This document shows, piece by piece, positions 37,875-42,983 of a stretch of DNA of 64,000 nucleotides; position 1 is the first letter of the stretch, and every line of letters begins with the position of its first letter. The notes under the pieces were generated by a model. It was given only the letters and a program-made list of their open reading frames with translations. It had not been told where the DNA came from and ran no database searches. Source of the stretch: Neoconidiobolus thromboides FSU 785 (Eukaryota; Fungi; Entomophthoromycota). The translations under genes and the position numbers were made by a program. The stretch spans positions 1-64,000 of the forward strand of contig MU626300.1 of NCBI GenBank assembly GCA_025603075.1, read 5' to 3'.

Positions 37875-38643
37875 CCTTTTTTTTTGATTTTTGAGAATAA
37901 ATAAAGGAAGAAATAAAGAATAAAAGGACAAATTTTGTATTTTAATAGTTAATGGTTTATGTTTTATAATAATTAAATCCAATTTAATTATTTAATATAA
38001 ACTAAAATTGTTAGCGTTATTAGCTAACTTGTTTATTTCTTGTTTTTTTAACTTTAACTGAAAAGAGTTAGATTCTTTTGGACTTGAAAAAAAGTGATAT
38101 TATAATTTGTAAAAAATTCATAGTTTTAGGTTAAGTAAAAAAAAGGAACAAGTTATGTAAGATAAAAATGAATCTTCATTTGTTCTCTCTTTAAAAGTAA
38201 TATATAATTATTGACTAAATAGAGTAATTATAACCATATCTTTCGGCCATTTTATTCCTATCTCTTAATAAAATATGTAGTTCTAAAATATTAATATAAA
38301 TAATTATGAATAGAAACTAAAGTTATAAATTCTAATAGTAATAAAACACTTCTTAAATAATGATTATCTGGTTTGTTTATAATACTTGGAATATTTATTA
38401 TTATAATAGCTATATAATCATTATAATCATAGAGATAATAGCAAATTTATCTTAAAATATTAGATTTAGTAATATTATGTAATAGTTTAGATATTGTAAT
38501 TTTTTTTTTTTTAGAATTTAATAATTGTTAAATTGTAAAATGATTTCATTAAACATATATAGATTAAAAAGTAGAAAAATATTTATTACTTATATTATTT
38601 AAGAATATATTAAAAATAAGATCTAATAATCTCATTACTCTCC

Positions 38644-41600
38644 TTAAAGAGCTTGTGAATCCCTATTGTTCCCTGTAGAAATTTGAGTAAGATTAAGATC
38701 TTCCAACATAGCCAACCTTTCAAGTGTAATTTCTTCAATACATTGTTCAATAAATTCTTTATAATATTCAATATTTTCACCAAATACAGTATAAAGATGT
38801 TCTTTAACTTCTCTTCTTGTAATCGTATGTAAATCCGCATCTTGTAAAAAGTAATAGATTTCCTCACTAATCATTTGTTGACTTTGTTCAATGGCTTCTA
38901 CTTGTTCTGGATAACTAGAGGATTTCATAGAATTTGAAATCATTGGGTTGGTATTTTGTTGAGATGGTGCACTTGATTGGGTATAAGCATCAGAAGTTAA
39001 CTGATTATTATAATTAATAGATATTGAATATTCTGATGAATAATCAGAACCAACTACAGACATCATTTTTGGATCTCTAGGAGCAAAAGGTGGTAACCTT
39101 GCCACTTGTGAAGTTCTATTTAAAGAACCTTGTAAACTGATACCAGATAATCTAGATGATCCCACTTCTTTATTGGTACTAATTTGTGTAGTAAAAGGGG
39201 ATCCAGAATGTCTTGAATTTGATAATTTAGAACCAATAGAACTACGATCCAAAGTAAGCATAATAGGTTGATCTAAACTAGATTTACTATCTGTTGTGGT
39301 ACTTGGTGGTAAAGGGAAATTCTTAGCAATACCACCCAATTTCATTGCATTTGATTCATTATTATTTTGTACCTGCCAACTCATTCCACGCAATTTTTCT
39401 AAATTTTGTTCCATTGGACTCATTGGTTGATGATTAAAAGTAGGTGAAACTGGGGAAACGGGTAAAGAGGTACGGGAGACTGAATTATTCATATCATTTA
39501 GATTGTTACTGTTATAACCACTACTGCTATTACTGGTAGTTGGACTATTATTGTTACTATTATTGTTACTATTATTGTTATTGATATTATTTATATTACT
39601 TATTGTATTAAGTGGACTATTTTTAATTATATTACTATTTCTTGATTTTAAGCTTGTGTTATCACTGGGGGTACTAATGGGTACACCAGCACGATTGATA
39701 TCTGTATATAGAGAAGACATAGGTAATTGTTTTGGAATTGAAGGTGACTTCTTTAAATAACTTTTTTCATATGGAGTAAAGGTATATCTAGATTTATGAG
39801 TATTATCAAAATTTTCTCCATCAATGGCTCCATGTGGTCTAGATCTTACTTGATCTCCACCAAGATCATACCAATTTAAATCATCCATTTTAATTAAAGA
39901 ATAAATAGGAATAATAATATAATAAAAAGGTAAACCAATAGTAACATAATATAAACAGCCTAATAATAAATTATTGTTCTTTTCAATAACACATGATAAG
40001 AATAAAATAACTACAATGAATAAAGTAACAATAGGAATTAATACAGAAGGTAAATCTAATTGTATCAAACCTCTTAATAACATAGCATAAAAGTAGAGTA
40101 AGAATATTGGACTAAGTAATTGAGCTAAAAATTTAATTGAAATAATAATGAATGTAATTATCTTTGATGAAAAGATACAAGAACTATTAAATAATTCAAA
40201 TGTATTATGTAATTTAGTATTAAATAAATTCTTTTCTCTTTTTAATAATTGTTGAAATGATTGATAACTTAATGTAGTAGCCTTAGCTTCTTGAATATAA
40301 CCTAATTTCATACCCTTCCAATGTTTTAATAAACAAGTATGAATATATTGTTCTTCACCTAATAATACCATATGCCTTGTATGTAAAGTAGTAATACGTT
40401 TATTAATAATATAACTTAATAAATCATAATCCATTAAACATAATGATCCAGTTGCTTGCTTTAATCGATATAATATTAATCCTGATCTTAATTGAGTTAT
40501 TAAATTGAATTTAAAATTAAAATAATTTTGTATATTTCTATTTAAATAATTGTGAAATAATTGTAAGGGATACAATAAGAAATGATTGGAGATATCTTTT
40601 AATAAAATTTGTCCTGATACTGCTATATAATCTGAATTACGTTGCATAAAAGAAGTCATATGAATTAATGCTTTGTTATCTAATAATATATCTCCATCCA
40701 TATTTAATAAATAATCAAATTTTAAGGGATCAATTTCTAATTGATCCATATGTAATTGAATATCTTCTTCTAAAGGTGTTAATAAATTTTCATTTGAAGT
40801 TAAACCATCTAAAAAATTTAATAAAATTAATAATGAATCCCTTTTACCACGATTCCCATTTAATTCTATTTCATAATTATTTCCAACTTTAACAATTAAT
40901 ATATAAGGTACTCCATGATTTTCATTATAATAATGTCCTGAATATACTTTAGCAAAGTTAATATTCTTTTTACCTAAACCTAAACTTTGATATGTTTTTG
41001 ATTTAGGTTCCACTCCATTATAGTTTAATATATCTAATAAGGAATCTGTACATGAATTACCATCACTTATTATCATTAATAATTTATTATGATCTGTATA
41101 ATGAGAATTAATTAAAGAATTAATACTACTTAATAATTCACTTTTTGTTTCATTAAAACAATTTAAAAATAAAATACATTTACTATCATTATTAACATCT
41201 AATAAGTTATGTTGTTGATAATTCATTAAGATTGATATTAAATTTAAAAATAAGCGAATAATTGTTATTAAAAAAGGTAATAAAATCATTATTATTGGTA
41301 AATACCATATCATACAATTACTATAAATACCAGCTAATTTACTGGGCATTAATTTACCTTTATAAATTAAATTATCTAAACACAATTCAATTGCTTTAGA
41401 ATTCTTTAAATTATTAAATTTATTACTAATATCCTTATTTTTGTCATTGATTATTAACTCATTTAATTGTTTATTAATAAAATAATTATTATTAGTAATA
41501 TTATTATTTAATATTAATAAACTAGTATCATAAACCTTATTATTTAATATAAAATAATTATTATTTAATTCATTATTATTTAAATAAATATCTCCTATAA

Positions 41601-42301
41601 TATTCTTTTGATATTCTGAATATTCATTATTTTCATAAAAACAAGGACCATCTTTACTATATTCATTATCTCCTTTTTTAATAGGACAATTGACTAATTT
41701 AAAATTATTAACTTTATAATGATTATTCATTAAAACTTTAAGCCAATTATCCATAGAATCAAAATCATTATCATTAATACAATCGTTAATTAATTTATAA
41801 GGTGATAAATCTCTACCAGGTAAACGAGCAAATAAACTAAATTTTGGAAAAGAAAGTGATATATCTTTTCCTTTATTGTCATTACTAAATGAAGCTAACT
41901 TATTGATATTATTATTCTTCAAATTAACCACTTTACCATGAATTATATTATATCCTTCTTTTTCTACTGTTGATATTGAATATAGATTATTACTATTACA
42001 TATTACATTTGGCAAACCTTCGCCAATTATTAAAAATAAAATTGAACTTAATGTTGTTAATATTAAAAACGAAACCTTTTCTCGATGAAATTGTACTTCA
42101 TCTAATTAAATGATAAGTAAATTATTTTTATACATTAATGAATGAAATTAATATAAACCTACCTTCTCCTTTAATGCCCATTGAATGAAATACTGAGTTT
42201 GGTAAAAATAAAGTAAAAAAGTAGCTTAATTTAATCCATAATCCTCTTTTAAATGTAATATTTTTACGACTGGCAACAGTGCCTTCCATTTCATTACCCA
42301 T
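38644..42301 (-). CDS. Chitin synthase-like protein (class IV/V/VII division, C-terminal DEK_C, no myosin motor) with degenerate catalytic motifs; 2 exons
   Basis: Exon 1 (ATG 42301; LWIKLSYFFTLFLP) splices to DEVQFHREKV and runs into ORF 38644-42015; GNRGKRDS, ISDG, LLGEEQY, KMDDLNW; DEK_C-like FLQDADLHTITRREVKEHL. Confidence 0.85.
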
Positions 42302-42983
42302 CCTCTTGTTTTAATATTAAGCTTATATTAGTGAAAAATTAATTAATTTTTTTATCAAAAAAAAAAATAAAAGTAGAATTAATTATAAAAAATTTATTGC
42401 TAATTCTTCATTCTCTGTTTGTTCCTTTTTTCACCCTTTGATTTTGATTTTGATTTTGATTTTTTTTTAAATTCCTCCACATTCAATTGTTGGTTTTGAT
42501 TAGTTTAGGTTAATTAGAATCTTAAAAGAGATTTAATTAGCTAATTTTATGAAATTGACTTCAAATTAAGCCAATCAATTTGGAGAAGGCTTATTTTATG
42601 GTAACTTTGGTAAAAATTCTGTTCCCTGAAAAATAAAAATTTATTTAAAATATTAATTTATTATTTGACTTATTTTTATTTAATAATTATTATTAATAAG
42701 TATTGAAATTATAATCTATGAATAACTAAGATTTTACTTTAGTAATTTAATTTAATATATTTTTATTGAAATATATTTGTAATAATATTGTTGTCATTAG
42801 TTTATTATATATTATATACTTAATTTTTTAATATTTTTATAATTTTAAGTAATTGATTGGCTTTATATTCAGTTTATTAGAATTTCAATTAATAAATTAA
42901 AAATAATTTACAATTACTAAAAATAACTCAAATTCATTTTATTTTTATAAATCTCAATAACACATCACTACATCATTCATATA

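Follow-up and report, generated by a model that had tools for sequence, protein, structure and literature searches.

An intact, expressed chitin-synthase-like gene of Neoconidiobolus thromboides has lost its catalytic motifs and is kept by selection

We describe here a chitin-synthase-like gene on the minus strand of a 64,000-nucleotide (nt) stretch from the entomophthoromycotan fungus Neoconidiobolus thromboides FSU 785 (GenBank assembly GCA_025603075.1, contig MU626300.1, positions 1 to 64,000 of the forward strand), hereafter the window. The evidence supports an intact gene, at 38644-42301, that has lost the catalytic motifs of its family and is kept by selection. Our reading, to which we give a probability of roughly two in three (about 0.68), is that it encodes a non-polymerising division-2 chitin-synthase paralog that is expressed and functional and works through binding, as a regulator, a partner or a binder of sugar nucleotides. 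The marks by which a pseudoenzyme is recognised coincide here: the required residues are missing from the predicted protein, the gene is conserved under purifying selection, and its transcript is found. From the sequence we infer that polymerase activity would be lost, that binding of the nucleotide sugar would be retained and that the protein would have a partner or regulatory role.

The core of the window protein was aligned to nine canonical division-2 paralogs from the same genome and to 22 proteins of other fungi, 13 of them canonical, and was read against the nine motifs known from cryo-electron microscopy (cryo-EM) structures as summarised in PMC12653383. In that summary, motifs 1-4 form the "tub" of chitin synthase that binds uridine diphosphate N-acetylglucosamine (UDP-GlcNAc), the glutamate of GE(D) binds the donor sugar, the third arginine of QRRRW contacts the donor diphosphate, and the EDR aspartate is the base; the motifs for acceptor binding, channel gating and base function are given essential roles from the cryo-EM work (PMC12653383). 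In the window protein these motifs read as follows.

41146..41163, minus strand: motif 1, NCFNET for canonical PCY(T/S)EG; the glutamate is kept and is invariant in 23 of 23 aligned sequences.
41053..41073, minus strand: motif 2, IISDGNS for canonical xDG; DG is kept and is followed by a deletion of 8-9 residues.
40834..40857, minus strand: motif 3, GNRGKRDS, intact; identical in all 23 aligned sequences except that of Spizellomyces (GTRGKRDS, N-to-T).
40684..40704, minus strand: motif 4, NMDGDIL for canonical VDADT; both DxD aspartates are kept, and the three orthologs described below keep VDADT.
40603..40623, minus strand: AVSGQIL in place of canonical G(L/I)CGET; (S/H/N)G stands here in 10 of 10 sequences of the degenerate lineage described below.
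40543..40566, minus strand: motif 5, LQLFHNYL in place of IQV(Y/F)EY(Y/F); the E-Y pair is gone in the alignment.
40465..40497, minus strand: motif 6, TQLRSGLILYR in place of TCLPGCFxMYR; the gate proline is gone in the alignment.
40339..40365, minus strand: motif 7, LLGEEQYIH in place of LLGEDRYLT; in the alignment the base aspartate is E630 and the arginine is glutamine.
40204..40248, minus strand: motif 8, LLKREKNLFNTKLHN in place of LLSQRRRWINSTxHN; the glutamine, the third arginine and the tryptophan are gone in the alignment.
39826..39888, minus strand: motif 9 region, MDDLNWYDLGGDQVRSRPHGA in place of FDDFSWGxTR (NWYD...RPHG for SWGxTR); the site of the W[YSC]D...RxHG signature of the lineage.

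The tub residues E364, D393-G394, G462-S469, D515/D517 and E629 are kept; the UDP-GlcNAc-binding motifs 1-4 are present, and donor binding is predicted from them. All five motifs that serve the acceptor, the gate and the base differ from those of all 22 canonical enzymes aligned (nine own, 13 foreign). The CON1 motifs of a competent enzyme, QxxEY, EDRxL and Q(R/Q)xRW, read QLFHN, EEQYI and REKNL, and the gate motif (V)LPG(A/C) and the CON2 motif SWG read LRSGL and NWYD. A first-pass annotation made from the letters alone had called the catalytic motifs destroyed. Its replacements of GEDRYL by GEEQYI, of SQRRRWIN by KREKNLFN and of LPGCF by LRSGL are each present when the protein is set against the nine own paralogs and the 13 foreign canonical enzymes. 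The change of DADT to DGDI is also real, but because both aspartates of DxD remain this motif is altered rather than destroyed. Further changes have to be added to that list, namely CGET to SGQI, QV(Y/F)EY to QLFHN, SWGxTR to NWYD...RPHG and the deletion after DG.

The scaffold of the family is still recognisable. The window protein matches Chitin_synth_2 (PF03142) at 5e-63 and 213.9 bits (cut-off 27; 216.7 bits in the genome scan) and DEK_C (PF08766) at 2e-8 and 34-39 bits, with a sub-threshold match of 18 bits to a CHS4-like domain, and its hydrophobic segments lie at residues ~20-34, 56-77, 305-341 and 687-783. No myosin head (PF00063) was matched in Pfam, the protein starting only ~55 residues ahead of the first membrane helix. 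A six-frame Chitin_synth_2 scan of the same 24.6-Mb genome gave nine canonical division-2 genes (762-926 bits) against 217 bits for the window gene, together with a division-3-like gene, division-1 pieces and one further very weak match. An AlphaFold2 model of residues 272-835, built on a 23-sequence alignment, has a mean predicted local distance difference test score (pLDDT) of 77.8 and a predicted template modelling score of 0.79, and much of its glycosyltransferase-A (GT-A) core is above pLDDT 90. While a sequence search of solved structures with the window protein gave nothing at E 0.01 or better, Foldseek against the PDB placed Phytophthora Chs1 (PsChs1), Candida Chs2 (CaChs2), yeast Chs1 (ScChs1) and hyaluronan synthases at the top, with E from 1e-17 to 1e-14 and probability 1.00. 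On this model the membrane-integrated fold of the synthases, interfacial and membrane helices included, is predicted to be retained.

The gene consists of two exons, and the joined model of 3597 nt encodes 1198 residues with a single terminal stop, which agrees with the extent of 38644-42301 and the length of about 1200 residues proposed earlier. An uninterrupted frame of 1153 codons occupies 38644-42105 on the minus strand; upstream of it, an ATG at 42301 begins a 46-codon stretch that runs into a GTAGGT donor at 42162. At the base composition of the window, the probability of meeting no stop over 1152 codons is about 1e-43, and the full model of 1198 codons is stop-free, as the first-pass annotation had noticed of the large frame. 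The parts of the gene are these.

42163..42301, minus strand: exon 1, made up of the ATG, 46 codons and one base of the next codon, which the intron splits; in RNA-type contigs 42163 is followed directly by 42101.
42102..42162, minus strand: intron of 61 nt, GTAGGT...AATTAG, skipped exactly in a 3593-nt contig of run X4 and a 718-nt contig of run X6.
38644..42101, minus strand: exon 2 with the stop codon, encoding helices, a luminal cytochrome-b5/CHS4-like region, the GT-A domain, a C-terminal helix bundle, an S/N/P-rich linker and the DEK_C tail.
38896..39813, minus strand: low-complexity linker rich in S, N, P and T, ~305 residues, poorly conserved, between the last helix bundle and the DEK_C tail.
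38728..38883, minus strand: C-terminal DEK_C domain, which scores 38.8 bits when the tail is searched by itself and is strongly conserved in all three orthologs.

The exon 1 peptide shows the pattern W..L...T...P......G and, together with HREKV downstream, corresponds to the (A)WREKV segment of nine of nine canonical division-2 paralogs; in division-2 chitin synthases a segment of this type comes ahead of the first membrane helix. Exon 1, with its 46 codons, was compared by eye, and the database and fold searches were run with exon 2.

Contigs of four public runs were placed on 38400-42500. X4 and X6 were guessed to be RNA, and X2 and X5 are DNA runs; X4 comes from the same coded organism as the probable source of the window, and X6 from another. 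The X4 contig covers 38681-42101 and 42163-42288 with 0 differences and skips exactly 61 nt (CT..AC on the plus strand), and the X6 contig has the identical joint with ~31 differences. No exon-exon joint is listed for the DNA runs X2 and X5, which cover the place. Because the skip is exact in X4 and X6 and such a joint is missing from the DNA runs, the joined form comes from RNA, and two related organisms transcribe the gene and splice it correctly; the contigs speak for the presence of the transcript rather than for its level. The degenerate motifs themselves are seen in three other runs. X4 has 0 differences over the covered coding sequence, X2 records have 0-1 differences over motifs 1-4 and 6-8, and the listed differences of X5 over motifs 7-8 are all synonymous, the sole one within motif 8 of this diverged relative being a synonymous change at 40231. 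Canonical motifs in the reads would have pointed to an assembly error, and three other runs carry the degenerate ones instead.

A word-indexed search of 5.8 billion proteins returned three orthologs with 41-43% core identity, from Entomophthora muscae, Massospora cicadina and a Joint Genome Institute (JGI) metagenome contig of 26% G+C; the next matches were canonical class V/VII enzymes at 27-29% identity. A profile of the four proteins separates them sharply, with 1596-1743 bits for the orthologs versus 312 bits for the next protein. Common to the orthologs are CFNET, SGQ for CGET, the lack of the LPG proline, the loss of QRRRW (KERxx), a GGDQ(T/V)RxRPHG insertion and a highly conserved DEK_C tail. 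Motif 7 reads GEEQY in two of them and GEDVF in one. Besides the window protein, two orthologs show the deletion of 8-9 residues after DG; the third, from Massospora, has a gap in its model at this place. The metagenomic and Entomophthora orthologs are immediately preceded by separately called open reading frames of 271-272 residues (L015:5202-6017 and L017:7064-7882), which probably are N-terminal exons of the same genes. The deposited ortholog models of 907 and 941 residues therefore look truncated.

Purifying selection is visible both among close relatives and between genera. Of the best 40 of 244 differences from close relatives, 34 fall in the coding sequence, 31 of them at third codon positions and 28 synonymous, and the six listed replacements are all conservative (V/I, T/I, S/T, I/M twice and M/I). 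Counted over 694 synonymous and 2900 nonsynonymous sites, these listed variants give a ratio of nonsynonymous to synonymous polymorphism per site (pN/pS) of ~0.05. As for the listed indels, they are found in the 3' and 5' flanks and in the intron, and the length change within the coding sequence, at an N-rich repeat, is 63 nt and in frame; X2 and X5 DNA contigs carry this longer linker version (21 codons), which consists of a 37-nt repeat and 26 extra letters. An N-rich microsatellite lies inside the coding linker at ~39544-39582. A single contig, in a bin of low complexity and inflated depth, shows a 2-nt deletion at 41554, which probably comes from another locus. Comparison of the Entomophthora ortholog with that of Massospora gives a nonsynonymous divergence (dN) of 0.25 overall, falling to 0.18 in the core; synonymous sites are saturated (pS 0.75). 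The suspicion of selection that was first drawn from the open frame is borne out by the spliced transcript, by 28 synonymous changes among the 34 listed in the coding sequence, by orthologs that share the losses and by a low dN beside a saturated dS.

The same motif pattern recurs well beyond these orthologs, in CS2-only proteins of Mucorales, in one Spizellomyces protein and in Neocallimastix and Piromyces proteins. Ten members of this lineage were aligned, the Piromyces protein being left out of the alignment. The glutamate of motif 1, DG and the glutamate of motif 7 are kept in all ten, DxD in nine of the ten, and motif 3 throughout except for the N-to-T change of Spizellomyces. Lost from 10 of 10 are the CGET glutamate, the E-Y pair of motif 5, the proline of motif 6, the tryptophan of motif 8 and the glycine of motif 9. 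The lineage has in common a derived W[YSC]D...RxHG motif and (S/H/N)G in the place of CGET, and the window protein shows every one of these features. Among the matches listed, the W[YSC]D...RxHG signature is found in at least 30 of those without QRRRW, SWG and LPG. Most Mucorales members read LLGEEQY, identical to the window protein, and the members from Spizellomyces and Neocallimastigomycota are less degenerate, with GEDK and QxRR kept. For DEK_C, the window protein and that of Entomophthora give a significant match, Neocallimastix (18 bits) and Spizellomyces (13 bits) give no more than a hint, and the Rhizopus member has none by the Pfam profile. Judged by these sequences, the lineage spans Entomophthoromycotina, Mucorales, Spizellomyces and Neocallimastigomycota. 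This spread is a lower bound, as the word pre-filter missed known members. A profile search with the ortholog set found no new members, and one with the ten-member lineage profile added only the Piromyces protein. In the searched part of the supplementary sequences of Goncalves et al. 2016, used for comparison with class IVc, neither GEEQY nor WYDVWPT had a match.

Maximum-likelihood trees of the core region, under LG+C20 with posterior mean site frequencies (PMSF), place 11 degenerate proteins in one group, with support from the Shimodaira-Hasegawa-like approximate likelihood ratio test (SH-aLRT) of 100 without an outgroup and of 97 with the division-3-like gene as outgroup. That gene (L011:775-3366, minus strand; G000:C278) encodes a chitin synthase of 864 residues with a signal-like N-terminus and has all the canonical motifs (QDAEY, LPG, GEDR, QRRRW and SWG). 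Of the nine canonical paralogs, L001, L002, L003 and L009 fall with class IV and L004 to L008 with class V, and the window protein stands outside both clades, with the degenerate group. The canonical synthases of this genome have their nearest counterparts in Massospora, L005 in particular lying very near a class V enzyme of that genus, which suggests that the window comes from an entomophthoromycotinan fungus. Class IV (SH-aLRT 99), class V (92) and the degenerate group form an unresolved three-way split. A tree that unites the Entomophthoromycotina clade with class V and separates it from the remaining degenerate proteins is rejected by the approximately unbiased (AU) test (p = 0.0007). The window protein and its Massospora ortholog are ~2.0 substitutions per site apart in the tree, whereas a canonical class V pair from these two organisms is separated by ~0.2. 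This roughly tenfold longer branch points to a constraint much looser than that on the enzyme, though clearly still present. W[YSC]D...RxHG is a motif gained and shared, which argues for common descent, and the presence of similar proteins in several early-diverging groups suggests that we are probably dealing with an old non-polymerising relative and not with a dying gene.

Compared with known classes, the window protein resembles class V/VII enzymes (Aspergillus CsmA/CsmB, Ustilago Mcs1) in its division-2 core, N-terminal membrane hairpin with a W..T..P..G..(A)WREK-like segment, luminal cytochrome-b5-like region, C-terminal helix bundle and DEK_C. Unlike them, it has no myosin motor, has lost motifs 5-9 and CGET, has gained the RxHG motif and falls outside the class V clade. 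With class IV enzymes of the yeast Chs3 type it shares the division, a similar length, the lack of a motor and a weak CHS4-like match; those enzymes, however, keep all nine motifs, are without DEK_C and form their own clade (SH-aLRT 99). The proteins of Mucorales (Rhizopus, Mucor, Benjaminiella, Blakeslea, Choanephora), Spizellomyces, Neocallimastix and Piromyces have the same losses, the shared signature and the same place in the tree, but only 24-26% identity to the window protein, and the Mucorales members differ further in their large inserts and in having no detectable DEK_C. A precedent comes from the proteins ORY39038 and ORY46363 of the chytrid Rhizoclosmatium globosum, which have a CS2 domain and miss some or all of QxxEY, EDRxL and QxRRW; ORY39038 was judged by its authors as likely non-functional as a chitin synthase (PMC13561034, 2026). 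Unlike the window protein, ORY39038 is fused to GH16 and branches apart, and that study of Rhizoclosmatium globosum reports no analysis of conservation, of selection or of the lineage as a whole.

Pseudoenzymes, and chitin-synthase-like genes without CON1 (precedent PMC13561034), are known already. What we did not find described in the literature searched is a conserved, expressed and selected lineage with a defined signature in at least four early-diverging fungal groups. A motif-less division-2 class is not described in the review PMC12653383 or in the classification papers PMC5122149, PMC4734345 and PMC5353729, and a literature search for chitin-synthase pseudoenzymes or for chitin-synthase motifs in Entomophthoromycotina or Conidiobolus returned nothing relevant. 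A large survey discarded candidates without QxxEY, EDRxL and QxRRW as false positives (PMC5353729), and EDRXL and QRRRW have been stated as conserved in all classes (PMC4734345). The lineage went undiscussed in the literature searched probably because the former work filtered out its members and the latter assumed that the motifs are universal.

If the window protein is indeed non-polymerising, it would most likely act as a non-catalytic subunit or regulator, embedded in the membrane in the manner of an active synthase. It may still bind UDP-GlcNAc or UDP through the kept tub residues, and its membrane domain and conserved DEK_C tail could serve to pair it with active chitin synthases or to modulate them. 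The chitin synthases with solved structures are dimers (PMC12653383), and a passage of PMC4734345 cites the C-terminal region of DEK as a module of self-multimerisation. Several points weigh against this interpretation. An acidic residue at the base position in ten of ten members and DxD in nine of ten would not be needed by a structural protein, so that some chemistry is possible. The loss of the diphosphate-contacting third arginine of QRRRW from the window protein and its orthologs may have weakened donor binding. Long branches and skewed composition mean that the grouping could partly reflect long-branch attraction. The RNA nature of X4 and X6 is a guess, for which the exact intron removal is the one backing here, and the variants behind the polymorphism ratio are the best-supported ones. 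An UDP-GlcNAc sensor, one of the roles suggested by the first-pass annotation, would fit the kept donor motifs and the acidic base position, but these fit a repurposed transferase equally well.

Such a repurposed enzyme is the main rival explanation, and we consider it unlikely though worth taking seriously. The protein would be a glycosyltransferase or UDP-sugar hydrolase in which E630 (aspartate in some relatives) acts as the base for non-processive transfer to another acceptor or to water, and in which the QRRRW tryptophan, the gate and the channel are no longer needed. Non-processive GT2 enzymes do work without QxxRW, the degenerate lineage as a whole conserves motifs 1-4, DxD and the GE(D/E) acid pair, much of the GT-A core is modelled with a pLDDT above 90, and purifying selection on the core is strong. 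However, the window clade lacks the arginine of motif 8 that contacts the diphosphate as well as motifs 5, 6 and 9, and an alternative acceptor site is not evident. Nagahashi et al. are said to have found in 1995 that even conservative changes at the EDR aspartate or QRRRW abolish the activity of yeast Chs2.

That the protein is a genuine chitin synthase with unorthodox motifs is very improbable. In favour, its fold, membrane bundle and donor-pocket motifs are retained, but its five motifs for the acceptor, gate and base, which have essential roles according to PMC12653383, match none of the nine own and 13 foreign canonical enzymes, and in Pfam it reaches between a quarter and a third of the score of the paralogs. 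Scarcely credible, and already contradicted, is a recently inactivated gene drifting into a pseudogene, or else an error of assembly or annotation. A long terminal branch, an AT-driven composition and the low-complexity linker are what one would expect of a decaying gene, but they are outweighed by 1198 codons without a stop (~1e-43), precise removal of the intron, a pN/pS of ~0.05, the same losses in distant genera and motif regions of identical sequence in independent runs. There remains a bolder form of our own reading, which we regard as rather improbable as a whole: the degenerate proteins would be an ancient third division-2 branch of early-diverging fungi that was lost in Dikarya, would have given up polymerisation while keeping the UDP-GlcNAc pocket, and would serve as UDP-GlcNAc-sensing regulatory subunits which, paired with active synthases, set the place and amount of chitin or chitosan in the wall.

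Two further loci of the same genome deserve mention. Head-to-head with the chitin-synthase-like gene lies a DUF3605 (Gig1-family) gene at 43081-43560 on the plus strand, with 57 bits and with its Pfam match starting ~780 bp from the start codon of the former; the genome has no other DUF3605 match. Candida GIG1 is induced by GlcNAc and affects sensitivity to nikkomycin, and this link makes the pairing suggestive. However, a search of 6-8 kb around the three orthologous genes brought up no DUF3605 sequence, and since the pairing is not found there we keep the neighbour as an observation and not as a functional partner. On another contig, a second CS2-like frame (L012:1258-4194, plus strand; G000:C52, ~91995-94931) runs for 979 codons without a stop and scores 78.5 bits with Chitin_synth_2. 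It is far more degenerate, with GIRGNRDN for GNRGKRDS and without DxD, ED, QRRRW, LPG and SWG, and BLAST gave no useful similarity between it and the window protein.

Chitin synthases are a main antifungal target, early-diverging fungi carry many more such genes than Dikarya, and Mucorales and Conidiobolus-like fungi include pathogens of humans and of insects. Part of the expansion of chitin synthases in early-diverging fungi appears to be conserved, expressed and non-polymerising. If this is true, counting genes gives too high an estimate of catalytic capacity, and wall synthesis may have a regulatory or substrate-sensing layer that has gone unnoticed. Should the bolder form of the reading hold as well, it would mean a pseudoenzyme layer of cell-wall control that published surveys have removed by design. 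The lineage can also serve as a dissection of the enzyme made by nature, in which the donor pocket remains without the acceptor site, the gate or the channel entrance.

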